Positions 8,153 through 56,247 are shown, counted from the stretch's first letter. The stretch is DNA of 64,000 nucleotides from Chlorokybus atmophyticus (GCA_009103225.1 RHPI01003516.1:24062-88061); one strand, 5' to 3'. Notes: generated by a model from the sequence alone, not told the origin. Made by a program: numbers and translations.

Positions 8153-8170
8153 CGAACGTCAATCCGTGTG

Positions 8171-10001: not shown

Positions 10002-10506
10002 TGTTGACGGACGACATCCAGTCAGCCTGACTCCCATAGACTAAGGCATTGAGTATTAGAAATGGCTAAGTCCTTGTGCACGTCGCACTTGCAATACGAG
10101 GACTGATATCGAGCAGTTGTGAGTCTAGAGCTCGATATCGGTACAGACTGCTGGCGGACACTCGAAGACTCCGGACTTGGGAGCATCTGGAAGAGTCTGG
10201 CGACAGGCCAGAGCTTCGGTAGAAGTTGCAGAACTTCGTGGCTACTTAGTTGCAAGGAACGTGGCATAGCTTGTTGGAAAGGTCTTGAAGCTGGCTACGT
10301 GGAGCAACTTAGAGCACCTCGATAGGACGCTTGTAGAAGGCGCAGGATCTTCTAGAGTAGAGGTGTGTAGTCTGGCTAAGTATATAAGCTAGCGGACTAC
10401 ACTTGCTTGAACGGAATAGTGATTGCTTTTAGCCCAAGCCTTGGCGGCTGTTGTGTTGTATGTGTCATGCCCTGCCCTGCTGCATGTGTCCAATAGCTTC
10501 CCCACA
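10002..10506 (+). repeat. Copia A 5' LTR
   Basis: TG...CA ends. About five substitutions versus the 3' LTR by eye, all transitions. Confidence 0.9.
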
Positions 10507-10509
10507 ATA

Positions 10510-10522
10510 GGTTATGGGCCCA
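10510..10522 (+). promoter_or_regulatory. Copia primer-binding site
   Basis: GGTTATGGGCCCA directly after the LTR, the typical Copia internal tRNA-Met-fragment PBS. Confidence 0.8.
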
Positions 10523-10629
10523 CTCTACGCGTGAGGAGTGCGAGTTAATGGAAGCGTGGTACACTGGTAGCTGACTGGTAGCATAGTCTTGGGTGTTGAC
10601 TGGCTGGAGAGAGGCGCGTTCAACCAAGA

Positions 10630-11750
10630 TGGAGTCTAGCTACGACAAGGGGCAGATTGCAAAGCTGGACACTGACAACTACAGTACCTGGTGTGTGGAG
10701 ATGAAGGCCTTGCTGATACACAAGAAGCTATGGAAGCATGTGGATCTGAAGGCGACACCACCACCTGTTGGAGAGAGGTCTGTATGGCTTGAGAGCTCGC
10801 AACAGGGACTTGCCTTGATTGTGTTGAACTGCAAGTCGTATCACTTTTCCATGCTATCTGCATGTGAGGATGGTAAACAAGCTTGGGAGAAACTTGAGTC
10901 CGTGTTTCAAGCCAAGAACAACGCAAGGAAGCTGTCACTGAAGAAGCAGCTGAACTCCATCAAGAAGGAAGCTGGTGAGCCTGTCACAAAGTAATTTGTA
11001 TTTGTCGCGTGCGAGAGAGTTGTGGGCGAACCTTACTGATGTCGGTAGCAAGATGGAGGAGGAGGACGTTGTGCTGGCTGTGCTGAACGGGCTACCATCT
11101 GAGTATGAGGTTGTCACTACTCTACTGGAGACATCGTCATCGGTTCTTACCCTGGACGACGTGCTGCCAAGCTACTCACCGTAGAGCAGAAGACAACAAA
11201 GAAGGACGACCATGCAGATGCTGTGGTTTTCTACAACAAATATAGAAGGCCTGGAGGACACCACAAGCAGCTACGGACCGGCAACCGTGACAACAAAACT
11301 AGAAGCAGTACTGGTAAACGACATGCCAAGCTGAGATGTTATACCTGTGGAGTGGTTGGACACATCAGCAGAAATTGTCCCAAGCGTTATCAAAATGGAG
11401 GCGCAAGCACCAGCGGCAAAGAGAAGGCGTTTGCATTTGCTGCATCATTGGGAAGACACCATGGAAGTTGGGTGATCGACTCTGGATGCGAGAGGCATCT
11501 CACGCCACATGTGGAGCTGTTGAAGGACTACACGAAGCTGACTCATCCTGTAAAAGTGGAGGGCTTCAATGGTCATGTGCTGGAGGGCATTGGGGTTGGG
11601 AGCGTGAAGCTTCATACCCAGGTCGGTGCCACCTTTCATAAGGTCTTGTTGAGGGAGGTGTTGCACGTTCATGGTGCTGCTGCGAGTCTATTTAGTGTAG
11701 CGACCGCTGAGCGCGTGGGAGCTGAGGTCATGTTCAAGAATGGACGCTGA
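10630..11750 (+). pseudogene. Copia A gag (CCHC knuckle) and protease, disrupted
   Basis: KLDTDNYSTW, CYTCGVVGHISRNC and WVIDSGCERH motifs. Stops at 10992 and 11748 plus a frameshift. Confidence 0.9.
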
Positions 11751-11753
11751 AAA

Positions 11754-14522: not shown

Positions 14523-14555
14523 GCAGGAGCTTGAGTCAAGCTGCCTGCGTGAGAG

Positions 14556-15052
14556 TGTTGACGGACGACATCCAGTCAGCCTGACTCCCATAGACTAAGG
14601 CATTGAGTGTTAGAAATGGCTAAGTCCTTGTGCACGTCGCACTTGCAATACGAGGACTGATATTGAGCAGTTGTGAGTCTAGAGCTCGATATCGGTACAG
14701 ACTGCTGGCGGACACTCGAAGACTCCGGACTTGGGAGCATCTGGAAGAGTCTGGCGACAGGCCAGAGCTTTGGTAGAAGTTGCAGAACTTCGTGGCTACT
14801 TAGTTGCAAGAAACGTGGCATAGCTTGTTGGAAAGGTCTTGAAGCTGGCTACGTGGAGCAACTTAGAGCACCTCAATAGGACGCTTGTAGAAGGCGCAGG
14901 ATCTTCTAGAGTAGAGGTGTGTAGTCTGGCTAAGTATATAAGCTAGCGGACTACACTTGCTTGAACGGAATAGTGATTGCTTTTAGCCCAAGCCTTGGCG
15001 GCTGTTGTGTTGTATGTGTCATGCCCTGCCCTGCTGCATGTGTCCAATAGCT
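14556..15052 (+). repeat. Copia A 3' LTR
   Basis: Direct repeat of 10002-10498, ending at an N. Confidence 0.9.
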
Positions 15053-15327
15053 NATGCCTACATGGCAGGGATCTTGCGAGTCCCCACCATTACTCACGAC
15101 ATGCGGCGACAGCTACTACGCGCCGTATACCTGCAGCCCATGCCTTAATATCATCACTGGACCGACACGGACACCGAGCCCACGGCCACGTGGGAAGGGA
15201 CGTTGGTCAGAGAAGCGGCTTATGCTGTCCGATGGACGTACGCCGCGGAGCAAGCTGAACGCGAGGCAGGCCCACAAGCACCGGGTCCTCCGGGGTTTCC
15301 TCCACAGCCATTGGTACACCCGCGGGC

Positions 15328-15973
15328 ATGATTCCATCTTCGCAGAGGCAGCATCCACCTGCGCCGCCACCACAATCGGCGCCGGAACCTCCAGCACCGA
15401 GGCCCCCCCGTGTCTACCAACCACCACGACAAGGTCGGTTCGGCAGAGGGAGAGGGCAAAGAGGGGGTTCTCCATACCCAGCATGCAGAGGAGCTCTGGC
15501 TGCCATGCGCTCAGCACCCCCAGCTGAGAGAAATGAGGCAAAGGTGCAGACAGCTCGTATGAAGAGGCTGCGCATCAATGCCAACGTTGCCATGGTGGCC
15601 AACCAAGGCAAGCACGTTACCATTAACGGCCTGGCACCCAAGCGAGTGATGTTGGACACCGGAGCACAGCCTGTCATCATCGGGCGTTTCCTTGCGCGGT
15701 CCCTCGGCATAACCAGCTCCGACTTGGTGCCTTGCCCGTACGTGTTGAACACGGCCACAGGTACGTAGCCGAGATAAGGTGATGGGAGTCACCAGGGAAG
15801 CCTTTTGCATTCGGTTGACAGGGCTGGACCCCACCCACACAACCGAGATCGTCCAGCAATGTGTAGTCACTAATGCCGGCTCCTTCGACTTTTGTGCTTG
15901 GGCAGGACTTCAACTTTCCTGTGGGCCTCGACTGCTGAACAGAGCAGGCGTGGTTTCGGCCACATTGGGATGA
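15328..15973 (+). pseudogene. Retroviral-type aspartic protease of the Ty3-DNMT element
   Basis: VMLDTGAQPVIIG motif, frameshifted C-terminal part. Confidence 0.8.
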
Positions 15974-16199
15974 GGATGACGGAGAGGTGCAGGGTGTTCT
16001 GCCTCTCGAGTTGGTCTCGCGCACGCGCGCCCAGCGTAAAGTGGCTGCCGTGGCCACACGCAGCCACGCCCTCACACGGGAGGCTGCAATGGCCACATAC
16101 AACGGCGCTCGGACGCAAGTCGCTGCTGGTGCCACAGCCCCGTGTTGAACCGTTGATCCCTCTCCCACCCCGTACAACGAGGAGCAGGAGGATGCCACC

Positions 16200-17354
16200 G
16201 TGGAAGTAGCATTGCAAGACCCAGCTGAACGGCGCTTGCGCGCACAGATGGACGCACACGTCTTGCTCGCCCATCCACTGACCACCACGCGCTTCCCCAA
16301 CTACCGAAGCCACAACAAGGTGCAGGACCACCATATGGTGGCCACCGTAGTGGTGGAGTTCCACACCTTTCGCAGGCAACAGGGCATCACAGTGTTGGAG
16401 CTGTTTGGAGGCATTGGCAGCGGTCTTGCCGCGGTCCTCAACACGGGTGTGAAGGTTGTCAAGTACCATTACTGCGACGCAGACCCACACGCGCAAACGG
16501 TCCTCAAGCACCACTTACGCCAACTGCACGAAAGGTATTCGCATCAACTACCCCTACCGGCGTTGCAAGGCAGCCTCAAAGCATTGGCACAAGACATCCG
16601 GCTGATCACCGAAGATCACCTACTGTCCCTCGGCAACGTCGACCTATTAATAGCTGGGTGGGAACGCCAAGAGCACTCCAGGGCAGGCAAGGGGCAAGGC
16701 CTCGAACACCCTTGCTCAGAGCTGTTTTGGGAGCTGATGAGAATCATCCACCTCCTTCAACACCACCAGATCTCCAGACCCCTGGGGTACGTCATCGAAA
16801 ATGTGCATTCAGAGGACAACAAGCGTCTGCACGTAGCCTCCAGCTACCGACAAGTTTGCTCCATTCTGGGGCACCCAGTCAAGGTGAACGCTGCACGACA
16901 TGGCTCGCGCGCACATCGTGTACGTGCCAAATGGACAAACCTGGCCGCCGTGGAGGAACTCATAACCGCAGAAGGCCTCACCAACCAAGACGCCGATGGC
17001 CTCAGTCGCAACTCTCACCTCAGCACCAACGACGCAACTGGAGCTCGGCATGAGCTCGTCCCTGCAGCAACAGCCCCCACCATGGCAGCCATGTTTGCTG
17101 CTGCCGTATTGCGCTCAGGGCGCAAGACCAACACCACGGCCTCAGCAGTGGCAGAGGAAATTCCTGCCCTTGAGCCTACCGGCCCTGCGGCAACCACACC
17201 CTTGGGAGACGCCCACGCAGCCGACATTGACGTCGATAACACAGAGCTGGGGCCCACTGACACCAGGCGGGACATATGGCAGGACAAGCCATCACTCTCC
17301 TTTTTTCAAAGTGGCCAGCTTCCCTCCGGCATGAGCGCCCGAGAGAAGGACTGA
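16200..17354 (+). pseudogene. C5 DNA cytosine methyltransferase (partial) within the retroelement pol
   Basis: Motif I VLELFGGIG, motif IV DLLIAGWERQ (catalytic Cys position is Arg), motif VI YVIENV, motif VIII HRVRAKWTN. C-terminal motifs absent. Confidence 0.85.
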
Positions 17355-18722
17355 GTCAACCAACGCACCCGCCACTATCGATGGGCAGGTGACAAGCTGT
17401 ATCGCCGCTTCCACGACAAAGACAAGGAAGTGCCGACACAGGTCACGCGCGAGGGCATCATCACTTCCCTCCACACTGAGCTTGGACACTTCGGTGTCAA
17501 GTGTACAGTCAACCTGGTGAGGGCACAATATTGGTGGTATGGGTTAACAAAACAGGTGCAGGGGTTCGTCAGCCACTGCCATCAGTGTGACATGGTGCGC
17601 GCCAGCCTCAACACGCGTAGCGCCACCTTGCACCCACTCCCCATCTCCGGTCTCTTTTACCGATGAGGGCTCGATATCTTGGGGGACTTGGCACCCTCAG
17701 CGCGTGGCAACCGTTACATCCTGGTCATGATCGAGCACTTCTCCAAATGGGTGGAGCTGGTACCATTACCCAACAAGAGCAGCAGGGGGGTGTCTAAAGC
17801 CTTCCTCTCTCACGTTCTCAGCCGATTGGGCAGCTGTGCCGAGGTCATCACTGACCAAGGTACTGAGTTCAGAGGGGAATTCGACACCCTATTGGACAAA
17901 TGTTACATCGACCACCGCCGTACCTCGCGTGATTACCCTCAAGCCGCCGGTCTCGCCGAGCGTACAGTGCAGACCATCAAGAAGGCACTCCGCAAGTACG
18001 AGAAGAACACTTGGGATGACCACCTCCCGTGGGTGGCCCTCGGATATCAATTGTCAAAGCAGGCGGCTCTGCGGGAGTACAGCCCGTACTACCTGCTGTT
18101 CGGGCGACCACCATTGCTCCCCTTCCGTGCGCAGCAGGAGGTGGATCGCGTTATGAACAACCTCGACGACCCTGACTGGATGCACCACGACATCACCAAG
18201 CGCGCCATGCTTTTCGAGCGCACCGTCCCCATGGCCTTCAACAACCTGCGCATCGTGGAGCATCGCGTCACGCTGCGCTACGAGCGCATACGCAGCGGCT
18301 TCTACAAGAAGCGCCAACGGCGGTTCCAAGCGGGGGACTTTACCTATCGCATGGCAGCCACCAAAGACACGCTTGACACCTCCGTAGGCCGCACCGTCTA
18401 CAAGGTACTCAAAGGGTACCCCACAGGGGTGCTGGACCTCCTTGGTCAAAATGGAGAGAGGTTGAAGGACAACATGGTGAACTGTGCGCCATGTCACCTT
18501 CCTTACGTAGCCAGCTTCGGGCGTATCCAGCACCCTCGTCCCGCGCGCAGCACACGCTGTGAACGCTACGGCAGCGCCGGCGACGACGCACTCATGATGC
18601 TTTGCGATGGCTGCAACAAGGGCCTGCATTGCTACTGCCTGAAGCCACCTTTGGACGCGATACCTATGGAGGAGTATTGGTGCGACGATTGCCGTACCAA
18701 CGGCCCTCCTCACTTGCGCTAG
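17355..18722 (+). pseudogene. Ty3 integrase (HHCC + DDE core) with C-terminal PHD finger
   Basis: LHTELGHFG...CHQC, ITDQGTEF, GLAER and MLCDGCNKGLHCYCLKPPL...YWCDDC motifs. Stops at 17352 and 17664. Confidence 0.92.
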
Positions 18723-18771
18723 CAGCTGAGCTCTGGTGCTGGAACCTCCCCCAGAGCCCAGGGGGGGTGGC

Positions 18772-19834
18772 TTGTTGACTTTGTGTGCTACAGCACAGCA
18801 TGTACATTATAATTAGGGAGAACACCGACTCCACCTGCCCGTACTACCCAGCAGCAGCAGACCAGCTGCACAAAGCACTTGTCACCATGAGGGTTGGGGT
18901 CATCTTTTGTTTTTGCTGCGCGTTACACAGGTGGCGCAGCAGCATGTCCAGCAAGCATGGCTGTCCATGCAGCTGTCCGAGACAGCGTAACCCTCGACTC
19001 CCCTCGACCCGACAGCTGTCATGCCTATTGCCCGGGCATGCCAGTCATCATCGGGCATGCCTACAGCGAGACCCTCGCCCGGCTTACCCGCATGGCGACC
19101 CGTGCGCGTCACTGACCAGTAGCTAGGTCATGTCTCTAGAGTAGCTCATGACCATAGCCTACATAGGCACCGCGCGTAGCTGTTCAGTTGTGAGTTGGGT
19201 TCTATATCGAGTGGGGATTTCCTGTGGAAATAGCCTCGATATGGCCGTTAGCTTATGTTCTGGACAGTCATGAGTTGACTTGTATAAGTAGGCACAGTGT
19301 TCCCCGGATCAGCTGGTGACACTGTAAGTGAGAAAGCAAAGAGCTTGTGAAGCGACTTGAACTACGAAACACGCCGTCCCGGTTCCCCAGAATCCCCTCA
19401 CCGTGTGAGAGCCTGTGCATGTTCTTGTGCACTGTGCTTGTCCTTGTTGTGAGCTTGGTGTACTTGGTGGCGGGGTGCTTGTTGGCATCAGTCAGGGCAT
19501 AGCATCCACGTGTTGCTTGCTCATTCACCTCACTTAACAGTGTAATTTCTCTTCCACTCATGCAAAGAACTATGTAAACAGCGCTACCTATAGTAGTGGC
19601 TTGACTTTGTGTGCTACAGCACAGCATGTACACCAGGGAGAACACCGACTCCACCTGCCCGTACTACCCAGCAGCAACAGATCAGCTGCACAAAGCACTT
19701 GTCACCATGAGGGTTGCGGTCATCTTTTGTTTTTGCTACGCGTTACACAGGTGGCGCAGCAGCATGTTAAGCAAGCATGGCTGTCCATGCAGCTGTCCGA
19801 GACAGCGTGACCCTCGACTCCCCTCGACCCGACA
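18772..19834 (+). repeat. A-B-A 3' terminal repeat of the Ty3-DNMT element
   Basis: A 18772-19014, B 19017-19600, A 19601-19834. The same layout occurs at 34621-35670. Confidence 0.85.
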
Positions 19835-41219: not shown

Positions 41220-43564
41220 CTGAAGTTTATGACGCTAGCCACAATGTTGTTGCAGCTGCATCATGTAACGTCGCATAAAGCAAACATCCGCATGGCTTAA
41301 GCATGCACGAGCAGTTTTGTCTACATATGTCACCTGAAGTTGCTAGTGCAAGCAATGCATAGGACGAGCTGGCTTGTTCGACTCTCCCATCGTACAGGTA
41401 CAGCACGCTTTGACAGAGCCTCGAGCGTTGCTTGGGCTTCACAAAAATCTCCTGCAGGAGCTTGTCCGGACTGTTGCTGTAGCTGATACTAAGAATCACC
41501 GCTCGCATGCGCCCAGAGCAGAGCAAAGCTGAGCTACTACCGCTCCAGGCGACGCACTTGTCGCCGCTGTGGTAATAATGGGAAAGCTCGTGAGCTGACG
41601 GACGGTCATGTCAGTCGAAACGCCCGGGAGAGAGTTTGCCTCTGCGCCGAAGTTGTGAACATCGGCTGCGAGTTGCCGGTGGGTCGGCCCGGCGGTGACA
41701 GGCCAGCCGTTTCTGCTAAGCCTGCGTTGCACCCCATGAGTCAACCGACAGTCGGGCGGATTTCTTGCACGAGCGCCGCCGGCTTGTCGCGTTGTAACGT
41801 TATCGTTATCAACACCTCCAGGTATTGACCTGAACCAACCCGTCCTGTTGATAGCCATGAATGTAAACTTTCGGTTATGTCGTAAAGGCTGGAACTGCAC
41901 GCCCATAATCATCATGGCTTATCATGGCATATACCTGTAGTCGCAGGTAGTATTGTCCTGCTAGTAGAGTGAGTATCGTTCTACGGCGTTATCGTTTAGC
42001 GGCCGCTCGGTAGCAGCAATCAGAGCGCGCCAACGTTGGCGACATGCCCACGCGCCTGCGACCTTAGAATCCGTAGCCGCTGCATGCATGAGCGGCCTGG
42101 AGCAACTTCATAAACGACGACCAGCAGCTGCTGCCACAGTACCAGTGTATAAGTGTAACAATGCCAGTGCATAAGTGTTTTTGCCACCTTTCAGGCAATT
42201 GATATCAAAAAGAGCCCTTCTGGTACTACCACTAATTCATCGGCATGATTCTGCATACTTGGGTACTGATGCAACCACTCCTTGTAAGTGAGCGAGTTTG
42301 AAGCGTGTGTAATATACTCGGAAGCAATCCGACATAGGCCGGCGGCCTCCCCGTCTCCAAAGGGTTGCCTCGCTATGACATGGTCCAGGTTGCTTTACAT
42401 GGCTGGGAGCGAATGACACATGGTTGTCCACAGTCTAGTTGTCGTTCTGTATAATGTGTGCACCATGCGCGGTATAAAGCTGTGAGCTGGGCCTGTGTGC
42501 AAACCCCTGCCCGACATGCCGACCGGGGGCGTCGTCAACAAGGTGTAACTGTGATATTGACCGGACGCTCCAGCCTGACTAACTCTTGAAGGTGAAGTCC
42601 GCGGAGTGCTGTCGCGTCAAGTCTAGCTAGGCCTAAATGCAGCAACACGAGCCTTGTGTAGCCACTGTCACCTGCACACGCAACATGTCACATCACCAGC
42701 GCATCATAATATTGTGAATCAGTTGCACTTTAAGTTGAAGCGTTGTCCCGGTCGTACGTGTGGTTGGTCCATCATGATCTTTGTCATGAGTGCTGATAGT
42801 ATGCGTGCGGGGGAGCAAGCACACACTAGGCATTGTCACTGCCGCCCAGACAGCCTCCTCAGGGCTCGCAGCCTGCTTAGGCACCGTCATCTGTCCCTCA
42901 TTGGCTTCTGTGCTGCCTCCAAGTCAGTCTGTTCACACTTCACTCGCTGATGTCAGCACTAGCAGGCATTGAAAGCCTTGGCCAGCATCGCACACTTAGG
43001 CATACATGCAAGTCACTTGTACACATCATGTAGCCAGATGCTACGCTGGTGGTTGCATCTGCAGAGAACCTTGGTAAACAGTGAGCGGCGTGGCCTCACT
43101 GAGAACTTCCCTCGGTTTGTGCAGGTAGATTGCAAGCTCGGGAAGCGTGTGAGTCTTTGAGCAAGAGCTGGCTGCCGTAGTACTGCGTTGCAGCACAAGG
43201 GTACTTACAGCGCAGTTTGCTGCAACAAAGATCTTGGGGGTCGAGTGCATTAGACGAACTGGCATGCATGAGGCGTTTGATCCGATATGCTGGCTAGCCG
43301 TTTCTTCTCATCTCATGACAATTTATAAGTTGTACATCTGCAAGCTTGAGACCATGTCATTGCTAGCTGAGGTTCATACTGCACACCATGGGGTCGTATT
43401 GTAGTAGTTGACATGGCATATGCCCAGCTTGTTGGCACAGCGGCTGCCATAGCATATTGCATGCTGTCGCATTCATCCTGCAGCCGCCGGTGTAAGACTA
43501 CTAGATCAGCCTGCAAGCTCCATTTAAATGCTTAACACAGCATCATGTCAGCAGTGGTCAGGTC

Positions 43565-45410
43565 ATGACAACATCCTCCATCCGAGTTGTGGTGGCCACT
43601 GCTGTCATTGGGGGCGCCGTTACTGTGGCTGGTGCACTGGTTTTGAAATACTTCAATGAGGCCCAGCTGGCAGCCATGGACCCTTCCAAGCCAGGTATGT
43701 TGGTTGGGCTTGCTTGATTGACAGGGATTACTGCTCCTGTTGATGCTGATTGCGCAAGCGCATTGTGCGATCGTAGGCAGGTGGCCTTATGCACAGCGTG
43801 AGGCGGCCAACCGTAACGGTTTGGAGCTGGGGAACAAGCTCAGAAGTCAGGACTATTTACAAGCAAGAGATGCCATCTTTGCCTTTAAGCATGACTGCGA
43901 AAGCCGCCAGAAATCGTATGCAGATGCCTTCCTCACGGGAGACTGCACATCAGAACAGTACCAGCAGGTGAGCATGCATAGCACTAGCATGCATCTCACC
44001 ATTGACTGCCAGCTTGCAGAAGCTGACCAGCGCTGATGCAATGGTCATAATGTGCGCCTGTATTTATGCAATGCCATTGTTGTGACCGCAGGTGGATGCA
44101 GCGCGCAAGCAAATCTCAGGCATCTGGAGGCAAGCTACCAGAAGTTACAGAGCATGTCAGCTGGCAGACGCTGGCAGCGACATGTTTTCTCGCAACCGCA
44201 GATGGCTTCGCGACAGCAACGAGATGAGGGTGCTAGTAGAACCCATTGATATAGCCAATTGGTACAAGTGCAAGCAGCACCTGCCTGAGAAGGGACCCAA
44301 TGCATACAGTGGACATTACGCAGGTAAGGAAGATGCATGTGTGTGTGCACATGTCTTGGGGATTAGAGTTGCATGCAGGTCATCATGGTGTTTATAGCTA
44401 CCTGTTGTTGGAGCAGATCACATCAGTAAGCCAATCGAAGAGTCCAAGCGGCCGTCTTGGTATGCATTTGTCGAGAGCAAAGCGGAGGCGGAAGGTCTTG
44501 CAGTAGAGAACTCCGTGCAGAAGGCGTTTGAGTATAAGAAGCTGGTGTACGAAGGAAAGCTGGTGTACCAGAGCATTGCAGACGCACGAGCGACGCCTCC
44601 TGTGGGGTTTAAGCGGCTCTCACCTCTGCAGCAACAAGGTGCCACACGCTAGCGCTGGTTGCTCCAGCAGGAAGTGCTTGCACACATGCCATGGGGGGGA
44701 TGATGCTGGAGACTGGCTGACATGCGACCCGTTCGCGCACAGCTGCCACGAGGACAATGGACTGGCAGTACGATGTCTTCATCAGCCATGCTGGCGAAGA
44801 CAAGGAGTTTGCAGACGAGCTGCATCATGACCTGAAGCAGCTGGGCATGAATCCTTTTCTGGACAAGTGTAATCTTGCTGCCGGTGATGCAGCGGATGCC
44901 ATTATGCTTTTTTCTGCAAGAAGAGCTCCCGTGGGTGTGGCAATCATGGGACGCACCTTTTCTGCCAAGACATGGCCAATGAAGGAGTTGTATATTGTGG
45001 TGACTCAGGGCACCCTTCTGCCGGTGGCCCTTGGTATTAGCTATCAGCAGCTTGAGAGCGACCTGCGAGCAAGTCCTCAAAAAAGAACTCTTGGGAAGAC
45101 GGATGAGGAGTGGGAGACCTTTGTCAAACAGGTGGTACGCACTACCATGGTGCTCGACAACAATCAGTATCGAAGGAGATTGCGCGATGAGATTGTGTTC
45201 CACGTGGTGCGAAAGTATGTTGAGATGTGCCCTCAGTTGCCGGACACTAAATGGGGTGCCCGACGCCTTGACACTGCGCTTGCTGCTGTGCGCGGTATCA
45301 ATCCCACCCGCTTTCCAGACCTGCCCGCCGGACAGGTACACGAGGCTCAAAACAAGTGGCTGCCTGGGTTAGAACACATGGTACAAGACAATAGTCACCC
45401 CCGCTCTTAG
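43565..45410 (+). CDS. TM helix + EDS1/PAD4-type EP domain + TIR fusion protein (480 aa model); alternative is a 262-aa EP gene ending 44652 plus a separate TIR gene 44757-45410
   Basis: Exons 43565-43694, 43777-43967, 44092-44323, 44417-44638 and 44743-45410 give an open frame. EP motifs FKHDCE...SYADAF...RKQISGIW...RVLVEPIDIANWYK...GHY...RPSWY. TIR motifs YDVFISHAGEDK...FLD...WPMKEL. Confidence 0.8.
44757..45410 (+). CDS. TIR domain (TIR_2-like), putative catalytic Glu retained
   Basis: YDVFISHAGEDKEFADELHHDLKQLGMNPFLD...SAKTWPMKEL...LLPV. Confidence 0.92.
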   Translation: MDWQYDVFISHAGEDKEFADELHHDLKQLGMNPFLDKCNLAAGDAADAIMLFSARRAPVGVAIMGRTFSAKTWPMKELYIVVTQGTLLPVALGISYQQLESDLRASPQKRTLGKTDEEWETFVKQVVRTTMVLDNNQYRRRLRDEIVFHVVRKYVEMCPQLPDTKWGARRLDTALAAVRGINPTRFPDLPAGQVHEAQNKWLPGLEHMVQDNSHPRS

Positions 45411-47006
45411 CTTGTGTAGTATACATGTTTATAAGCACACGCATGGAATGTATGTTGGTTGCATAAAAACATCAGTCTGACGTGTTCTGCATGTGAGACA
45501 CAATATACGTAACAACACTCAACGAATGCAGTGTGTATATTGTCAACAGATTCAGCAACAAGTACTAAAACATGGGCTGGCGCAAGCTGCTAACATCATA
45601 CAAAAAAACGGCAACATCATCACCATGGTCAGGCGAGCTTGTTGCAGCCTGCACCCCTAGGTCCGCACATCCACATAATCATTAATCATTAAAGCCAAAG
45701 TAAGCATATTGCCCAAAGGGCAAGTGCTCGCTGCGGCTGCGGATATTCTCAGGATAGGAGTTTGACAACGCCTGCAAGTGACACAACTGATTACAATCGA
45801 ACAACTAAGGGTTGTTAGCTTGTTAATGCCGCTTAGCAACTACGAATTTGGCTGAGTTGAAGTAGTATATTTTTTGTATTTACGAACAAAGGTCGCAACA
45901 TACACATACACGCGCACTAGTTACATGCACGGACGCACGCACGCGTGTACACATATGCATATACGTAGGTAGGTAGGTAGGTAGGTAGGGTATGGTAGAT
46001 TGGCTCATAGTATGTAATTACGCAAGTGCGCAAGTATGCAAGTATACAACAGTGTTAATGTGTACTACTCACTTACTTGGAGGTCGGCTTGGCAGATTTA
46101 TGCGCAAGCACAAGGACTGACACATGGAAGTCCTTGTGGATGGATACCATTGGTGCAACATCTGGATGAAGGAATGACCACCACCGCAACGGGAAGGAGA
46201 GGATGGCCGCCAACCTCTCCACTCAGCTTCAGGCACACACACACTCAAGCACATCCCCACACACACGTGCAGAGCTGCCACGGGCACCCCACCCCACTAA
46301 GGATGAGAGGGAGAGCCCCTTTAACACCTAAACTAGGCACCCTACACACAAGACTGAAGTATGCACCTCAAGAGCTGGCCCCACATTTGATGGGACACTC
46401 CTATATACTCCCCCTTGCTGCTCCCCGACCTAGAACACGAATGTCCAAGCCTACATGCACTGGCATTGCTGTGTTGACCGTCATACTTGCCTCGGGGCTG
46501 CCACACATTAGCCTCAGACCTTAATAATGCCTCGGACATTGTGAACGTCCTTAGCTGGTCAGCTGCATAGGCTGACCGTGTAACGGCATCGGTACAGTTT
46601 CAGCATGAGGCGCTGGGTTGTCTCCATCGTCAATAGCGTTTTGTGGGTACCGAGCGCTGCGCTTGCCCGACCAGTGCGCACAATGCAGCTAGCTCGGGTG
46701 GTGCACTGGTGACATGTAAGTCATCGCTGCCAATGGCGTGTGCCTTGCTTGTTGCAACAATCTTAGCTCAACGTGCTTGTTGGCAAACTGAACAGTCACC
46801 GTGAACTGCACGACTTGTTGTCAATCATAGGCGCGTGACTGGTAGCTTTGTATCTGTGTAGCTAGCTCGGCTATTACAGCTGGTTGACATACGGCCAGCG
46901 CTGTTGCCACTTTCAAGCAATCCCCACTGATTTCAGTATTTGACTCTGTGAGCTGAACCGCATTCTACCTACGAAGTAACTACATGTGCACAGAAGGCAG
47001 CCACGC

Positions 47007-48723
47007 ATGCAGCAGCAAACTTCTGCCTTCATCAGCTACTGTCAGAAGGACAAGTCGCATGCGCAATGTGTGCGAAACTTAGCGGACAGATTACAAGCCG
47101 GACGGACTGCGTGTCATTGTGGACTACATGAATGATGGGACAGTGTCGTGGCCTGTCTTTGTCGGACAGATGCTGGAGGACAAGACCAAGGTGCGCACAC
47201 GTAGTCTAGTTGCAACCATTGACCAGCCTCTTGTGACCGCAATTGCACGTATCGTGTGGTGTACTTGAGTTGCTGAGATGCTGGGTGCAGGTCATTGTTG
47301 CCTACGATGAGCACTACAAATACTACTCCCTCAAAGAGCCAGTCTTAGACAACGACATGCTGGGCAGGCGTACTCATGACGAGTACACTAACATCCTTAA
47401 AATGTACGAGCAGCAAAACTTAATGGGCTGGCTGGTGCCAGTAATTTTTAGGCCTCCTGGTGAGAGAAGCCACGTGCCCAGCCAGAGTTAAATTCACTTA
47501 TTACTCCATCAATTAGCAAGACAAGGTCAGAGACAGGGTTTTGACTGTCACTTAAGCTTGCTGACTTGCTAATGAGGAACTATCAGACGGCTTTAGTTGA
47601 CCTAAAGGTGAGCTTCCCCTGATGTCGCGCATGAGCATGCGTGTGCATACGCATTCTGTTTAAGTAGTTATGAGCGGTATTTGATCAACATGGTTGCATG
47701 GTGAACCCTGCTGAATAAGAATACGACGACCTGCTGAGGCACTTGCATAGCATCTCACCGTTTATGACAGCAGCTGGAGCTACTGCCACTACGGGGGCGC
47801 CAGCCAGTGCTGCTCCACACGACAGGTAATGGTTGCTGCAGACCAACAGAAGGTCGTCGACAGATGCAATTGTTTGCACCAGCTGCTTTTGGGATGGCAG
47901 TTACGCAATCTTGTGTTTTAGTCCTTCACCTCGCAGTCCTTCACCTCAACACACTGGCAAGCAAGTTCGTAAGTCCGCTACCAGTGCGTTTCCTGGAAAA
48001 ATTGATGAGAAGGCTATGCATGAGTCGCAGATCTTTAACAGCAGCTGCTCTTGCCAGCTCTTCGTCACAGGCGTACTTGTCAATCAAAGAGCTGTTTGAC
48101 AACGAGGGCACTTTCAACAATCTCTGGAGGGACAACGCTCAACCTGCATTGGACAGGCTTTGAAAGTTTGAAAGAACTTCCTCAGATATCTACGTCAGAT
48201 TTCGCTCTTATAAACAAGATTGCAGCCCTGAAGCGAAGCTCCTGCAGCCTGTAAAAGGGGCGCGCAGGTATGAGCCTATTGTGTTGCTTGCAGCTACCTT
48301 GCACGGGCACACGTCAGTGCACGCATCCACGTTTGCACAGCCTCGTTGTTGCCTATGACCACCCCTTCTCTTCCATTGTGTACTTGCAGGGTGGTTAAAG
48401 ACTTCTGGTACAAGGCGTGGAATTGGTACACAACCGGACTGCTGCCTGTGGATTTTTTTAGCAACAGCAAGCCCTCGGGTGCCAGAGGGAACACCTGCAA
48501 ACTTTTCGCGGAACCCATTGATATTGCGAATTATTACCGCCTGAAGCTGTGGGAGCAGTGGCCGGAAGGCAATCGTCACTACCTGGAGGCGAACAACCGC
48601 CCAGTCCAATACGTGTTTCTGGAACTTCAGTACAAGAAGCACAACCCCTATAGCGTTGCACCCTTGTCAACGGCGCATGCGCTTCGTGAAGCAGACGCGG
48701 TTGAGGCCAGAGCGCATCTGTAG
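47007..48723 (+). pseudogene. SEFIR-like TIR + EP-domain fusion gene with a frameshift and a premature stop
   Basis: Exon 47007-47190 AFISYCQKDKSHAQCVRNLADRLQ[+1 nt at about 47098]DGLRVIVDY; exon 47291-about 47459 VIVAYDEHY...THDEY...LVPVIF; exon 48071-48267 with TGA at 48161; exon 48390-48723 DFW...LPVDF...LFAEPIDIANYYR...HYLEANNRPVQY. Confidence 0.8.
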
Positions 48724-50239
48724 AGGGTGCTTGCTTGCGAGCACTAAAGCTGCGGCAAGCAGCCATGCTTTCAATTGCCATCTTGGGTGAGTCGCTTTGT
48801 AAAGCTAGATTGCAACTCTGCCATAACACTGCGCAAGGCGGCTATCGATGTACGTACAGGACTGAGTAGAGTAGATGGTTAAAAAGCCAACAGAGACTTA
48901 GCGCACTGCAGTAGTAGTGCAAAACCAGAACTCATCACGCAGTTCCAAGGACTTTATGCAACACAATATCATGCGCCGACATGTCCACCATACACTTGTT
49001 GACATTGCTAGCTTCATGTGTAGTCAAGTATAACACATGTCTCCAAGTTAGTGTGGACACCAGAATTGTGTAAGACTGTTGCTCCAGCAAGTCTACTTTA
49101 CAAGTGATACTGGATGTTGAAGAGAGCCTTACGCAGCAGGTACAAGGCCTAAGCGCTTCTACGCACATAAGGCCTGCAGTGCATGGTAATCCCTCCATAC
49201 TTCCTTGGTGGCACAACTGCTTGCGGATGAGGCAAACGTGATTCAAGCTTGTACCTAGCAGCCTCAGCAAACACCTGTCCAATTCAAGTGACGCAAGGTT
49301 GGGGTGTCCATTGGGGGCTGGGCTTTATAAAACTGTCATCTTGTACATGAGCTTAAATACGCTCTTCCTTGGCATGCAGTCCTTGAAAGGATTTCCGTGG
49401 TCAGTGTGCACAAGCCCCCCGCAACACGCCACTGCATTCTTGTTAATTGATTGAGCATGGTTGTTTATGTGCCACGCTGCGGTGTGCAGTTGCAGTCTCG
49501 AGCTGCAATAGCACTATAGCAGGGTAGTACTACAGCGCTTTAGTTAAGTAGCATGTGTGACAATGGCTGCAGCCATGAGAGCAACATTTGCCGTGCATGC
49601 AATGTTGTATGGTAAGCATTTCCATATCTGCAAGCTACAACTGCTCTCTCTGCACACTAGCATATATGTCAAGCCTGCTCAACTGAACTGCCAAGCCAAT
49701 TGAATGATTTTCAAAAATTGGTAGAGGTGCACAAATGGACGTAACTAGCAGCTGGACTTTTCGGCAGGGGTTCTGGGCAGCTATGTAGAGGATTTCAGTA
49801 GGAGTAAAGCGCCCTGGAAATTTGCAATCTGTTTAGACATATAGTGCAAACCACTCAGAGTTGCTGTCTTCGTTTGCATTGGCATTCATAGATGCCCTCA
49901 ACTCCCTGCACCGAATAAGTCACGCTGACTGCAGAATGTGTCACCACCAAGCTTGTAGGGCACACAATGCTTGGCCCACAATGTCTCAACCCACCAGCAT
50001 GCAGGGTCGCGAGCAGGGTAGTCGTTTGCACTGGTTATGCAGTAAGCTTCAACAACGTGTGCTTGATTATCCAGAAAAGTGTATGACAGCCAGCTACCTG
50101 CGTGACAAGCAAAATGGTTGGTACAGACAAAGGTAGTTTGGCAGAGGGAAACGTGTGCAGGTCTGAACCAGGTTTGTGTTGGCTATGCATGTTACTTGCA
50201 TACGCAATTTGTGTCCATGACAACATCCATGTGAGCCTG

Positions 50240-53200
50240 TCACTCACTCCAATCATCTGAAGTTCTGAAGGCAAGCCATTTAGTCTGGACATGGCCATTA
50301 AATGCGTAGATACCCAGCTCGTGCGGACGCCTTTCACCTGAGCACTTTACCCACCCACCAGCTATGCGTGGGCCAGGTGTTGCCAGCTGCCTCCAATGCT
50401 TGATGCTGCCAATCTGTGTTGCTGTTTCCTCTACAACATCCAGCGAGCCTGCAATGCACGTCTGTGAGTCCCTAGAATTCCACCATATGGGTGATTCTGT
50501 TATAACCCATCTGGTGGGATGGGTAATCACAGAATATGGGACAGCAATCGGAGATATTCCGGAAGACATCGAGTCCCTCAGCAAGGACCGTTTATGCATC
50601 CACTGGTAAGGGCTCAAGCTACAACTGCTCCCGGGAAACTCTCTTGAGCGAGAATTCATCAAGCCAGTTGCTAAGGGCCGCATCTGTGGCATCTGCTATG
50701 TAGCGCCGCAGCTGCTTGTGCATTGCGTTGATGATGCGACTCGCGGCTTCATCTCAAGCGGGAAGTCTATCCGCTCAACAATGCCAAGGGGTCAGCAGCA
50801 TTCCTTGTGCGCCTGCCATTGATGAGCAAAGAAGAGGCCATGAACAGTGATGACACAACACAGATGAGAGAGCATGATGCTTGTCCTACCCTTGAACTTT
50901 GCCATCCGGAATATTGTGGCAACTCGTCTGAACTTGCTGCTTGCTTTTCGCTCCAACTGCGCTTCTAGCTGCCATACAAGCTTTTTACACTTGTGAAGAT
51001 GCTCAGGCACCTCGACTAAGTTGTTTCCCCAGATTTGCAACTCCTCCAAATGCTGCAACGACTCCAGCTCTGGTAGGTTGTTTAGCTTATTACAATCGAG
51101 CACCAACTTCTTCAACGCTTTCAAGCGATTGACTTCTTGAGGTAGCTCGACCAGGTCGTTTTGTGACACATCTAGCATTTTCAGGTAATGGAGTTCCCAC
51201 AGCTCAATTGGCAATGATGATAAACGAGTGTTGCCTAGAAATAGATAGCGGAGGTCTTTCATCTTGCAAACCTGCAATAAAGAATAAGCTGTTGCGGCAC
51301 AGATTGGGGATTGGGAAGGGGGCCATATGCAATGCACTGAGCGCAGGTGCACTGAGCTGCAGGAGAGATGCGCATTAACTACCAGCTGTTGCTCATATGC
51401 CCGAATCTGCAATGTTGTTCGTCAGTACATGTGCTAGCATCGCACGCCCCTCACTTGCTGTATCAAGCCTTCTGGATTGCAATCGACATCTATTGATCGC
51501 CAATGCTCGAGTTGCGGGAGCTCCATGCTCGGATGGCACGCAACTTGTTGCAGAAGTCAAAACTAAGGTAGACCAGCTTATGCAGAGTTAGACAACCTGT
51601 GGTGGGTACTGTGAGGGACGTCAAGGATGCGCAATAGGAGAGATCCAATATCTGCAACAGTCGCGAGATCAGTGGCATACATGCATGCATGCAGCATACG
51701 CGGGCAGTGAGTGAGCTGCACCTGCAGGTTTTTGAACTTGTTTAAGTCCGGCAGAATGACAAGTCTACCGCAACGTGACAAGATCAGCGTTTGCAGTGAG
51801 GGCAGCTGCACAGAAGCGGAATGATGAGAGGGTTTGAGGTGAGCGGCCATGCATTCCGTTGCAACCGTTCCTGCCATCATACTCTCCGTCTATACGCAAC
51901 TCACTTGGATATGTGCCTTTGCATCCCAGAGGTGCTTGAAGCTACTAACGGACAAGTCCAGCGCACAGAGCTTGTTGTAAACCGCTGCTCTGGTCACTTG
52001 CACGTTGTGCAGCATGTTCACTTGCAATGATACCAAGTGCTGTGCACTGCCCTTCATAATAAGATATGAAGCACGATTCACAGCCAGTAGCCGCAGGCCT
52101 TGGCCGAGGTCATGCGGTACAACAAGGTCGCGCTCTCGTTCAATCTTGATATCCATGAAAACACCCTGCACATCGCACTTGACAGTTAGCCAGCCAGCCT
52201 CAGAACTGATCGAGTGGATGCTATGCCAGTTATTATACTCCTGACATAAACCGCGGCGCTCTGTGACAGCAACACGACGTACATAATAAGGAGCGCAGAT
52301 CTGCACACATTGCGCCGTTTACTAAATAACGTGCAGCAAACCTGCAAAAAGGTTGCGCTGACATCATGTAATGTTGCAGACTTGAGACTTGTACGCTGTT
52401 GCGGCACTGCCAATTGTTTTATGTGCATTCCTAAAGTTATCATCAGATCGTGCATCACCAAAGTTTTGCCGGCGATCTCTGGGTGTTCTTCCACGCTTAT
52501 AAGGGAGCTGTCTTGCAGGCTGCGTAGCGCACCAGGCACTCCCCTGCCAAAATCTGCAAGATCCGCAGGGGTGGTCCAAATGTACACTCCAGCCCGATAA
52601 CCAATAAAAGTGCGTAAGAATGGATAGCACGCCAGGTCTAAGAAAAAAAAAAAAATAAAAAAAAAAATGCATTGCATTCCCTGTCTTGCATGAGGGTCAA
52701 GCTAAACAACAGGATGCTGAAGATGGCATCTTCCTTCTCCCCATGCACACTCTGCACGTCTGTTAGCCACTCCAGGCAGCGCAAAAACTCAGATAAACCT
52801 TTCCTGTGCAGCGCACTTCCAATCACCCGTAGTGCCAGTGGCAATCCATTGCACGCCTCCACCACTATTCTAATGACGGGTGCACACACTCGAGGCAATC
52901 GACTACGCTCAACTGCAGCGTATGCGTGCTCGTGCAGCTTGTCACAAAGGAAAAGGTGACTTTGGTTGAACTTGTCCGTACGAGCGTTGTCAATGATGCT
53001 AGCAAACTCGGCCTGTTCCTTGCGGGTGTGCTGCCGGTATGCATGTCTGCAAAACAGGATGACAGCGTCTAGTGGCTCTAAAGACGACACTTGCACGATT
53101 CCCACATTCTCCGGGTACTCCAGGCACGTGCGCTTCCAGGATGTGAGGATCACCTTGCTGCCTGCAGCCACGGCCACCAGCAACATTTCCGCCTGCAGCT

Positions 53201-54405
53201 TATCTATAATATTGTCAACGACAAGCAAAACTTGCTTGTTTTTTAGGCGTTCTTTTAATAACTGTCATCTATCCTGCAGATCGAGCCCGACTTTGGCATC
53301 GGCAGAGGTCTTACAGAGGGCCTCCAGCATTGCTTGCTGCTGTTCCTCCAGTGACGCGGTGCTCTCTCTTAAATCAAGTGTGATGTAGCAGCTCCTTCCG
53401 CAATAGTCTGCGGCAAAGTGGTTGTACACATGCTTGGCTATGGTAGTCTTGCCCACACCTCGCATGCCAAGCAGTCCCACCACCCTGTGTGTGTTTCCAA
53501 AAGCTTAATAACAGGTGCAGAGCATGCATGGATATCCACAGCCTCAACTTCAGCCACGCGCTTATGAAGTATGCTCAGCTTCTGGCAGACCCTATGGACA
53601 ACTTCTTGAACAAGTTGCAATTTAATCCTGCACATGCAACAATATCAGCAAGCAGCATCTCAAGCGAACGATGATGCGAGGAACTTGAGCACACAGTGTT
53701 CGCAGAACACGGCTAACAGTAGTTTGCTGGCATACAGTCAGGTTCCAGCACCTGAAGCTTCAAGCACTATCAGATGCCGCCAGCTCAGCAGCACGCAAGT
53801 TATACAGACACTGCCAACCAAACTGAGGCGAGTGGAGGCTAGGGTCAGCACTAGTACTGGTGCCCGCAGCCTTCCAAGCCCTTGCTGTGAGAGAGAGGCT
53901 TAGGAGACGGTGCGAGCTGCCCGGGAGAGGGGGGGGGGGGGGGGGGGGGGGNTTCTGCAGCCTGTTATGTCAAAAAGCTTTGCCATAGCTTGTCGCCATT
54001 CACCTCTTTTCTCCTCGTCCATCTGTCGCCCTTCTCTTATTGCTTGCTGCTTGCTCTCGTAAATTCTTAAACCGTTGTATATTTTCTTTCTCTTTATCTT
54101 TTTCTTAGTTTTTGTGACGCTTGTCACTCCAGTAGAACACGGGTACAATGTCTTTGTTTTGGTTAACCGCTTTCACCAGCTGTCAGGCAGTCTATTGACT
54201 CCAAAAACCGCCTTGAGAGGATGACAACGACAACCTGTGCAGCGCTCAAGGCGTCCAACATGCTTCGCTGCGCACTTGGGCTCCCTTTCAGATCGTTGTC
54301 ATCAAGAAAGGGTTTGATATAATAGCTGGTGCGTTGCAGCTCCTTATAGATATACGAGGCGATTGTTGTCTTGGTGTCAGGCCCTCGATGGCATATAAAA
54401 ACATT
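50240..54405 (-). pseudogene. TIR-NB-ARC-LRR (TNL) immune receptor, degraded
   Basis: TIR VFICHRGPDTK...PFLD...VPVFY...WRQAM; P-loop GMRGVGKTT; Walker B LLVVDN; GSKVILTS; CNGLPLAL; FLDLACY; MHD; LRR exons at about 50890-52270. Frameshifts at 54180 and 54131, TGA at 53265, poly-A at 52643-52667. 3' boundary uncertain. Confidence 0.9.
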
Positions 54406-56247
54406 TCACTGCACACACTCAGTCAGCGCTGAACAATAAACAATGCGGCACGCACACATGCACGCATGCACACATGTATATATGTGTGACAGCCATCCAA
54501 GACCTGTCGCGTCAGCGACACCGTGTGACGCCAAAGAGATACCCACACAATGCCCAATCACAAGAGGAAGCATCAGCGAGCTTACGGCGGGTGCCGGCGT
54601 CCTTGATTGAATTGTCACTGCCAGGAACTTCAGCAAGTGCGCTGACGGATTCCCTTGAAGTCATTACTGCGGATGGTAAGCGGGCTAAGCAGAGAACGAC
54701 GTGGTATTGCCCTCAGCTGCACTGCTGCTTCTGCACGCATCAACCCTGCAATGAGTGTGTGAAGAGGCGAGTGCCGAGATGAAGTCCAACTACCCTCACA
54801 TGCGATATGGGCGTATGCAAGGCATCTGTTAGTGGTCATCTATAATGTCTGGCCGGCTGCATGCATGCAAGATTGATATGCGATACACGGTATGCACGTA
54901 TGCAATTGCAAGGCATTTGTTGGGGGGCGTCTGATCATATCTGGCCGTCTGCGTGCATGTAAGATCGCATTGTACGTTTACTGAAAGAACGGATGTGACC
55001 GCAACCGTGCAGGTCGTTAGCATTGAGAAACGCAGCACTGTGATAGCTTGGGAATGCAAGTTGTCCGCATAGTCATTGTGGTAGGTGTGCGCATTGAGCT
55101 AAGGCAGGCAGGAAAGCTGTGCCAGGGCAGTGGCCTGTCACAAGTACACTGTGCAATCTGGCATGGCAAGTACGTACAGCTGCTAGGCAACGACAACCTC
55201 ACGCCCGCCGCTGCCTACCCACAGCAGCAAGGAGTGTGAGCCTCGCTGAGGTGCAGGAGCGACGCTGGACTGGCGGAAGAAGTAATCGCAAGAAGCACTG
55301 CCCAGCCGCTGGGCGTGGGGCGCACCGGGGGAGGCAGCAGTAGCAGCAGCATCCCAATCCTGGTCGGGACAGTGGCCAGCGCGGCACAATTACTGATGCC
55401 ATTGGGTACATATTCTGGGCTCCTGAAGTTCCTCCGACCCTTTGCCTCTGGGGTCGTACCACCAACTCAAATGTGCTCGCAGTTGGTCGGTGGTGCGAGA
55501 GGAACTGCTGGCGATGGCGTCGGCGGCGAGCAATGTCGAGGGCGAGGGCGCGGGCGCGGGCTCGAGAGTAGCTCAACATGCACCCGACGCTGGCAGCCAT
55601 CTTTGCCCTGCAGCTCGCTTTGCTGCTACTGCTTCCAGCAAGCAAAATTAGTGATCCCATGTGTGCCCGGTGCTTGTGTCGTCTGTGACTCTCGCTAGGC
55701 GGAGCAGTACGAGCCTGGCTTGAGGAACAACGCTTGATATGAATACGTCATATTAAGGTTTAGTTCCCTTTATGACAGCTATCTTGAGTGGGCCAATCAC
55801 TCGATTGCACAAGTTTATTGTCAACAACGACATTCATGCATTCGACATGCCCAATAGTTCGCGTATGCTTCTGCCGTTGTGATGCTTCCATGAAAGCCGC
55901 TGCGAGACAAATTTCGTTGTGGCTAAGTGCTCCCTGCGAGCAGCTTGACGGAGATGACGCGTTACGGTCAGAACACCGCAGTACCAGCAGCTATTGTTGG
56001 CGTTGCATGTGTACTCCAGCGTTGCGCCGTAGCTGGCGTTCACCTGGAATGCGACCTGGCGTTAAGTTTGCTGGCGTATTCTCCTTGAGTTTGCATCTGT
56101 AGATGGCCTGACTTCTATCGCGGCGAACATGTTTACAGTTGCAATTACATTGTTGCGTGTTTTCATGACGACATGCAAGCACCAATGGCCTGACCACATG
56201 CTTACAGAGTTCATGAGCATAATCTGGGTCATGATTCATGCCCTCGT

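Follow-up and report, generated by a model that had tools for sequence, protein, structure and literature searches.

Background

The EP domain, and with it EDS1 signaling, is regarded as an innovation of seed plants, and how algae, mosses and ferns signal through their TIR and TNL (TIR, NB-ARC, leucine-rich repeat) proteins when no EP domain is present is an open question (Kennedy et al. 2026; Johanndrees et al. 2022; Ngou et al. 2024). A 64,000-nucleotide (nt) stretch of DNA from Chlorokybus atmophyticus, to which we refer in full as the window, raises the question of whether an alga carries an EDS1-like immune module. A first-pass annotation had proposed one, made up of a gene for a transmembrane (TM)-EP-TIR protein (gene 1, + strand), a 'TIR-EP' gene (gene 2, +) and a convergent TNL (-) within 11 kb, and all of these parts do lie inside 43497-54408 (~11 kb). 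We find that gene 1 is genuine, nuclear and well expressed, that its product is a single-pass, predicted membrane-anchored EP-TIR protein with a catalytic-type TIR domain, and that gene 2 and the TNL are recently decayed copies in this assembly. In the explanation that we favor, to which as a whole we assign a probability of about 50%, the window would be a partly eroded copy of an EP/TIR/NLR neighborhood, whose three gene classes (EP-TIR, second EP and NLR, for nucleotide-binding leucine-rich repeat) would act in one TIR-signaling pathway. The descriptive part of this explanation, comprising gene 1, its family, the decayed neighbors and the recurring trio of genes, is very probably correct.

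A first survey of the window, by six-frame reading and Pfam, placed a TIR exon (44721-45407, +) behind an EDS1_EP-type exon (44086-44394, +), and also found a weaker second EP-type exon at 48274-48720 (+) and, on the minus strand, TIR, NB-ARC and leucine-rich repeat (LRR) segments running from 54405 down to 50795; the 64 kb, which are eukaryotic, held no further EP or TIR segments. The RNA evidence consists of assembled contigs from runs X1 (2021), X2 (2013) and X5; the depth of such contigs reflects expression only poorly.

Gene 1 encodes an expressed EP-TIR protein

The gene 1 transcript occupies 43497-45469 (+) in five exons (43497-43694, 43777-43967, 44092-44323, 44417-44638 and 44743-45469), separated by four GT..AG introns that were read from RNA contig joints in runs X1, X2 and X5. 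Contigs from the independent runs X1 and X2 lie on 43497-45469, with a loose poly(A) end at 45469 in the X2 contig, and contig depth is high over the gene and zero over 45600-47000. The coding sequence (43565-45410, +) is spread over five exons and specifies 480 amino acids (aa), ending in a TAG stop at 45408-45410. The product opens with a hydrophobic helix at aa 8-28 (43586-43648, +), a predicted membrane anchor whose top 19-aa Kyte-Doolittle mean, starting at aa 8, is 2.32. The EP domain follows at aa 45-262 (43779-44753, +), with three introns inside it and the core EPIDIANWY at 44239-44265, and then the TIR domain at aa 266-420 (44763-45227, +), which scores 48.2 bits with Pfam TIR_2 and 28 bits with TIR. 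Its catalytic Glu, E340, lies in WPMKEL (codon 44985-44987) and is kept in an alignment with the NADases TcpB and AbTIR, as part of the WxxxEL that follows strand C. By sequence this TIR is nearer to bacterial NADases (TcpB, 2.9e-9; AbTIR, 9.8e-9) than to the TIRs of plant TNLs (ROQ1, 8e-4), and it matches the ThsB and SAVED-TIR models of PADLOC. The TM-EP-TIR gene of the first-pass annotation is thereby borne out, by RNA-backed splicing and a poly(A) site and by its helix and domain scores (EDS1_EP 37.8 bits, TIR_2 48.2 bits).

Public annotation instead presents one long gene, Chrsp5S06985 (jgi/Chlat1/6701/Chrsp5S06985; here P0001), in which a single chain of 640 aa would run from TM-EP-TIR through a SEFIR fragment into a second EP domain (43565-48723), and this database protein does unite both parts. 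P0001 is identical to gene 1 over its first 456 aa, after which it continues in gene 2, bypassing the true stop (45408-45410) and the poly(A) site at 45469, whereas the true open reading frame (ORF) continues for 24 further codons to the TAG. With an X2 contig that terminates in poly(A), an interval empty of RNA at 45600-47000 and no RNA joint between 454xx and 470xx, we rejected the fusion, which we regard as scarcely credible. Between both EP genes there is also a stop-free stretch of 168 aa (46018-46521, +), rich in His, Pro and Thr; it has neither a Pfam match nor an RNA contig, and is therefore probably not a gene.

The EP domain of gene 1

The EP region of gene 1 scores 37.8 bits with Pfam EDS1_EP (PF18117), above the cut-off (gathering score) of 23.1 bits. 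A phmmer search with aa 45-262 against all PDB chains returned EDS1 and PAD4 only, and profiles built from the algal homologues, likewise searched against the PDB, returned EDS1, PAD4 and SAG101 only, with E values of 1e-16 to 1e-18 over ~120-155 residues. The domain was also modeled with AlphaFold2, as a single chain like all of our predictions, template-free and from 21 sequences that were all algal, none from seed plants, and this gave a predicted local distance difference test score (pLDDT) of 87.6 and a predicted template modeling score (pTM) of 0.82. When this model was compared with the PDB by Foldseek, the top 22 matches were all EDS1, PAD4 or SAG101, with nothing credible after them, and VIA-align gave Z values of 14.0-17.6 to the EDS1 family against 5.6 for the next fold, superposing AtEDS1 361-560 over 163 residues at 2.6 Å and AtPAD4 288-520 along the whole model. 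The PDB matches and the superposition of the model therefore indicate that the region corresponds to most of an EP domain, with a predicted fold that is nearly full, rather than to a short motif. The claim that the EP domains of the locus are true homologues of those in EDS1 and PAD4 thus stands, by sequence for both genes and by predicted fold for gene 1. From algae to seed plants, the best-conserved stretch is the EPxDIANxY helix together with the RPxxY loop.

Homology of this domain does not make either gene an EDS1. Pfam Lipase_3 has no match in gene 1 or gene 2, only 44 residues precede the EP domain of gene 1, and the lipase exons of a related algal contig (L004, see below) match nothing in the window. 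Because they have no lipase-like domain, neither of the EP genes in the window belongs to the EDS1 family as currently defined.

An EP-TIR family and two EP clades

Searched exhaustively by HMMER with the EP exon (77 aa), 1.84 billion representatives yielded 20 proteins. Among them, one from the trebouxiophyte Myrmecia bisecta is an EP-TIR protein of 505 aa that carries the UniRef name 'EDS1 EP domain-containing protein'; these 20 and one further search also supplied two more Chlorokybus proteins, P0020 and P0024, that consist of a membrane helix and an EP domain with no TIR, and the remaining matches were exon-sized fragments from metagenomes and transcriptome assemblies. All scanned algal homologues reach the EDS1_EP cut-off. 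Word-based protein searches gave just the window's own model, two Chlorokybus paralogues, or nothing, and scanning JGI metagenome contigs twice with EP alignments gave 119 and 153 pattern matches, none of which was confirmed.

The order EP-then-TIR is found in Chlorokybus, in M. bisecta and on the contigs labeled L004/L007 (L007, ENA ERZ22854972), L005/L006, L010, L012 and L013, that is, at seven loci from at least five organisms, and on its sequence gene 1 is a member of an EP-TIR family found in both streptophyte and chlorophyte green algae. In M. bisecta (L001, JALJOR010000010.1, 2-13109) there are four tandem EP-TIR copies, at 2-1100 (-), 3373-5094 (+, without the EP core), 6462-7806 (-) and 10001-13109 (+), three of them unannotated; the last copy alone is fully annotated, and the copy without an EP core has just a 107-aa gene call.

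A maximum likelihood tree of 21 algal EP cores contains one strongly supported deep split (95/91). Clade A holds all of the EP-TIR proteins, gene 1 included, along with the fragments; in clade B, the EP of gene 2 is joined by the EP that is linked to a lipase in L004/L008 and by the two TM-EP proteins of Chlorokybus. Since both Chlorokybus and the L004 organism have members on either side of the split, the duplication predates their divergence. Genes 1 and 2 thus come from two deeply separated EP clades rather than from a recent tandem duplication, in agreement with the first-pass annotation, which had called the two paralogues divergent. We tried a mapping of clade A to an EDS1-like and clade B to a PAD4-like lineage, and dropped it as inconsistent: gene 1 matches EDS1 best, and the clade A and clade B EP domains of L004 both match PAD4 best.

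Gene 2 and the TNL are damaged

Gene 2 begins with a SEFIR-like part (47007-47491, +) that has an ATG at 47007, an intron at 47191-47290, an exon from 47291 and a stop at 47489-47491. Its first 41 codons match the PADLOC model bSEFIR (4.4e-7 over 31 aa) and, weakly, Pfam SEFIR (E 0.1, 13.3 bits, under the cut-off), and the later parts of this 5' region have no SEFIR match in PADLOC or Pfam. A +1 frameshift lies at GGACGGAC (47100-47107), with a frame-A stop at 47133-47135, and the SEFIR-like pattern resumes in another frame (GLRVIVDY..., VIVAYDEHY..., LVPVIFRPPG). An RNA contig on 47064-47188 and 47291-47616 (joint 47188>47289) is identical to the genome, and therefore the frameshift is present in RNA too; the 47291-47616 segment of this contig passes through the stop at 47489-47491. 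There is no RNA contig on 47620-48340, and none that connects the SEFIR part with the EP exon downstream.

That exon, of clade B, lies at 48355-48723 (+), with an in-frame ATG at 48355, a possible acceptor at 48389/48390, EPIDIANYY at 48511-48537 and a stop at 48721-48723, and it is followed by an intron in the 3' untranslated region (48787-49136; RNA contigs 48341-48786, joint 48785>49136). It is transcribed (48390-48723) at low contig depth. Its EDS1_EP scores (15.7-17.2 bits) fall under the cut-off, AtPAD4 is its sole family match in the PDB (E 0.0036), and it is by far most closely related to the EP exon of the lipase-linked gene in L004 (tblastn 1e-22). Its score with our own EP profile (ep.hmm) was left out of account as circular, since the underlying alignment included gene 2. 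The EP core is 110 aa long, lacks the conserved Trp and neighboring residues, and sits on a long branch (1.28) in the EP tree. Gene 2 is a damaged and weakly expressed copy. What had been described as a 'TIR-EP' gene thus retains a real EP exon (48390-48723), short and weak as it is, but its upstream domain is SEFIR-like rather than a canonical TIR, is frameshifted and has no RNA link to that exon.

On the opposite strand, Pfam finds TIR, NB-ARC and LRR in TNL order along 54405-50795 (-): a TIR region at 53957-54408 (43.9 bits on the first 80 aa), an NB-ARC at 52189-53504 (26.5 and 50.1 bits) and leucine-rich repeats at 50795-51889 (LRR_14 63 bits, LRR_4, LRR_8). The NB-ARC motifs are all recognizable, namely the P-loop GMRGVGKTT (53468-53442), kinase-2 LLVVDN (53228-53211), GLPLAL (52847-52830), LDLACY and the MHD-type VMHDL (52458-52444). 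The domains of the proposed TNL are therefore present, but its integrity is not, the reading frame being broken in four places in the assembly. A TGA (54408-54406) stands directly ahead of strand A, 'NVFICHRG' (54405-54382), at a TIR start that has no in-frame ATG, the nearby ATG being out of frame; a single extra base at 54183 splits 'ESIDCL', which ends at 54184, from 'QLVKAV..DIVPVFYWSD' (54182-54123); the 'EKRGEWRQAMAKLFDITG' helix (54013-53960) comes after a TAA and a second shift; and an in-frame TGA (53267-53265) separates the P-loop from kinase-2. The TIR moreover has Gln at the catalytic Glu position, where WCLxEL is expected, and its homology to the TIR of a TNL on contig L010 ends at 'ESIDCL'. 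RNA run X1 contains 57% of the sampled words of 49900-54500.

An intron over the TGA at 53267-53265 was rejected, since there is no GT and the spacing from P-loop to kinase-2 (70 aa) is already normal, and the sole GT..AG option (52 nt) disrupts the frame; an upstream exon supplying the TIR start was likewise rejected, with stops in all three phases at the sole acceptor. Assembly error is a possible source of the TNL indels, one of which sits in an A-rich run. Inside the TIR region and near the frameshifts, the window also has a run of ~24 C (53925-53952, minus-strand reading) with an N at 53952, which is likely to be an assembly trouble spot.

These lesions bear directly on the pathway envisaged by the first-pass annotation, in which the linked TNL would make a signal and a heterodimer of the gene 1 and gene 2 proteins would perceive it, in the manner of EDS1-PAD4. 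In its favor, a clade A and a clade B EP gene are adjacent both in the window and in L007, and genes 1 and 2 and the TNL region are all represented in RNA contigs. On the other hand, two in-frame stops and at least two frameshifts interrupt the TNL, which reads Gln for the catalytic Glu, and gene 2 has a frameshifted SEFIR part and a 110-aa EP core on a branch of 1.28 that is missing the conserved Trp and other residues. According to citations of Wagner et al. (2013), dimers of the EDS1 family rest mainly on the lipase-like domains, which genes 1 and 2 do not have. The lesions of both genes, the Gln and the lost EP residues therefore make a working pathway from these three copies improbable.

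The same gene classes recur elsewhere

Within 12 kb on contig L007 there is a P-loop NTPase gene (+) with kinase-2 and GLPL-like motifs and a long TPR array, then, on the minus strand, Lipase_3 exons with a clade-B EP exon behind them, and an EP-TIR gene (+) head-to-head with these. The Lipase_3 and EP exons make up a candidate lipase-EP gene at L007 12694-15978 (-), the same locus as L004 5091-8375 and present also in L008. Its lipase exons carry GHSLGG and an FDIVPR-type Asp, one of them matches EDS1 and PAD4 only in the whole PDB (OsPAD4, 4.9e-11), and its EP exon matches AtPAD4 at 1.2e-10. Judging from exon order and strand, the lipase and EP exons would belong to one transcript, and their order is, as far as sequence can tell, the architecture of the EDS1 family outside seed plants, in a candidate gene. 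L008, which is 92% identical to the L004 contig, comes from a metagenome of the lichen Solorina crocea, the green partner of which is Coccomyxa solorinae (PMC8759389). The source of the lipase-EP contig is therefore likely to be a trebouxiophyte (a Coccomyxa-like lichen alga), the lichen fungus or a moss contaminant being also conceivable.

On L010, a eukaryotic 3.9-Mb contig from another sample, the interval 5464-19680 brings together a TNL and an EP-TIR gene with a divergent second EP gene (14230-14820, -) and a gene of the TIR-P-loop-LRR type; the TIR of this TNL starts 'VDVYICHRGPDTK' and resembles that of the TNL in the window. On L012 and L013 a second EP gene lies 3 kb from the EP-TIR gene. 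This second EP gene (L012 8022-8474, -; L013 8067-8426, -) seems to begin with a conserved helical segment (MVEALDIA.QV.AIVGALK...) that resembles the N-terminal helices of cell-death executors, a HeLo/RPW8-like candidate only, on which Pfam is silent. Another EP exon was seen on a metagenome contig, L014 (89-1414 and 8181-8549), where DUF900-like ORFs adjoin it and a reverse-transcriptase ORF (RVT_1) lies 7 kb away; no TIR was detected downstream of it.

Taken together, EP-TIR genes stand beside a second divergent EP in three unrelated contig groups (L007, L010 and L012/L013), an NLR-like gene lies within 4-7 kb in L007 and L010, and the trio of EP-TIR, second divergent EP and NLR-like NTPase is found within 10-12 kb in unrelated algal contigs. 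The co-occurrence that a clustered module would lead one to expect is thus seen at these loci and missing within 10 kb at five others; the linkage of EP, TIR and NLR genes is recurrent, not universal.

Such a pattern could also arise if fast-evolving defense genes gather, duplicate and decay in permissive regions of the genome, forming an immune-gene island whose members share no pathway. Two of the three genes at the locus are decayed, M. bisecta shows plain tandem amplification of EP-TIR alone, and partners are absent at several EP-TIR loci, all as this explanation would have it. It accounts less well for adjacent EP genes that come from anciently separated clades, for the recurrence of the same three classes in unrelated contigs, in varying orders and orientations, and for the single EP-TIR chain seen across green algae, which on Rosetta-stone reasoning argues for functional coupling. 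We consider an uncoupled island unlikely, though the strongest of the alternatives.

Discussion

The explanation that we favor sees the EP/TIR/NLR neighborhood as one signaling system, of which the window would hold a partly eroded copy. A nucleotide produced by TIR or SEFIR enzymes would be the ligand for which the EP domain is the receptor, as in EDS1-PAD4. Binding of this ligand by the EP-TIR protein would gate the TIR to which the EP domain is fused, at a membrane, and the gated TIR would in turn boost the signal or use up NAD+, with cell death as the outcome. Such a logic would be akin to that of bacterial sensor-TIR fusions rather than to the relay from EDS1 to helper NLRs, and gene 1 would presumably pair with intact partners encoded elsewhere. 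From the EP-TIR fusion and the linkage we infer that EP domains and TIR-type enzymes may already have cooperated in algae. A functional link between the gene classes, as their fusion and proximity suggest, is about evenly poised between right and wrong, and the mechanism by which a sensor gates the TIR is tentative. The notion of a clustered EDS1-like module in an alga accordingly survives as a plausible idea at the level of the family, but not for the three copies in the window.

Several observations weigh against this explanation. In the assembly, lesions disable both gene 2 and the TNL, and no pathway can therefore be read from the locus itself. Immune genes frequently cluster without acting jointly. 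The second EP of L010, L012 and L013 is not grouped with clade B (approximately unbiased test, p 0.08), L001, L002, L005, L011 and L014 lack both an NLR and a divergent second EP within 10 kb, and the source organisms of L007 and L010-L013 are assigned only tentatively. The remaining points concern the putative pocket. Using a numbering of AtEDS1 that runs via the YYRH...RPTRY stretch, we take the EPxDIANxY/RPxxY block to carry H476 and R493. Both are ligand-pocket residues of AtEDS1 (Jia et al., bioRxiv 10.1101/2022.05.02.490369), and genes 1 and 2 have neither: the H476 equivalent is Cys (after ANWYK) in gene 1 and Leu in gene 2, and the R493 equivalent is Trp in gene 1 (RPSWY) and Gln in gene 2 (RPVQY). 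Gene 1 retains basic residues ahead of the conserved Trp (RRW).

The altered pocket residues would fit an algal EP domain that shares ancestry with EDS1 and serves as a helical scaffold or oligomerization module, nucleotide sensing being a seed-plant innovation. The EP domain of gene 1 also lacks the last part of the seed-plant domain (AtEDS1 past ~residue 560), and EDS1 signaling is regarded as seed-plant-derived (Kennedy et al. 2026). Yet the most conserved block is the very part that lines the EDS1-PAD4 ligand pocket, the arginine of RPxRY/F is retained in P0020/P0024, in clade B of L004 and in the second EP of L010 and L012, and the repeated fusion or linkage of EP domains with nucleotide-producing TIR or SEFIR domains speaks for sensing. 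We hold the scaffold interpretation to be quite unlikely, if less so than a working pathway from the three copies of this locus.

In a wider reading, the logic of EDS1 would predate land plants: a nucleotide made by TIR-type enzymes would be read by paired EP domains encoded beside NLR sensors, two ancient EP lineages of green algae would cooperate, and the EDS1 family would derive from an algal lipase-EP form. Within it, clade A would be fused to TIR, and the fusion partner of clade B would be SEFIR, a membrane helix or, in the Coccomyxa-like alga, a lipase of the EDS1/PAD4 type. This reading is speculative, more so than the gating mechanism. Were it true, the EDS1 family of seed plants would descend from an algal form rather than being a seed-plant invention, and the lipase-EP gene of L007 is a candidate for that ancestor form of EDS1/PAD4.

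In our literature search no paper described a fusion of EP and TIR in an alga, an algal gene of the lipase-EP kind, or a cluster of such genes with NLR genes. Algal EP-like sequences are already known in passing and through automatic database names; the EP-TIR architecture, the fold-level evidence and the recurrent neighborhood appear to be new. What is added here is a nearly full EP fold, as predicted, which an expressed gene combines with a catalytically equipped TIR, in an EP-TIR architecture that is conserved in both great branches of the green algae and found repeatedly beside NLR-like genes and a second EP lineage. Concrete proteins are now at hand with which to test whether EP domains read TIR products a billion years ago, and how TIR signals are read outside seed plants, an acknowledged open question, becomes experimentally testable.

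Comparison with known systems

With EDS1, PAD4 and SAG101, gene 1 shares a homologous EP domain, including the EPxDIANxY helix, the RPxxY loop and an aromatic residue at the F419 position, as well as a setting of TIR enzymes and NLRs. It differs from them in having no lipase-like domain, and so no LLIF helix, in its N-terminal membrane helix and C-terminal TIR, in the shorter C-terminal end of its EP domain, in the altered equivalents of R493 and H476, and in its algal source, the family being regarded as confined to seed plants. The EDS1 family is further characterized by an obligate EP-EP heterodimer and its recruitment of an RPW8-type helper NLR. A closer counterpart is the M. bisecta protein KAK9810125.1 (UniRef100_A0AAW1PNW2), which has the same EP-then-TIR order, 41% identity in the EP core and an EDS1_EP score of 38.3 bits. 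Unlike gene 1 it has no N-terminal membrane helix, that copy has Asp for the catalytic Glu, and it belongs to a tandem EP-TIR array with no NLR or clade-B EP nearby; we found no study of this protein, only its automatic database name.

TNLs are known from green algae too, according to citations of Shao et al. (2019) and Gao et al. (2018). The minus-strand gene of the window resembles plant TNLs in having a TIR, an NB-ARC with P-loop, kinase-2, GLPL and MHD motifs, and LRRs in order, and differs from them in its frame, broken in four places, and in the Gln that replaces the catalytic Glu. In bacteria, the CBASS TIR-SAVED proteins and the Thoeris system, in which ThsB makes the signal and ThsA senses it, couple or fuse a nucleotide sensor to a TIR NADase. 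By analogy, gene 1 may follow the same sensor-plus-TIR logic, with a TIR that is closest to TcpB and AbTIR; its presumed sensor is an EP helical bundle, not a SAVED or SLOG domain, and it is built into a eukaryotic, spliced and predicted membrane-anchored form of the design.

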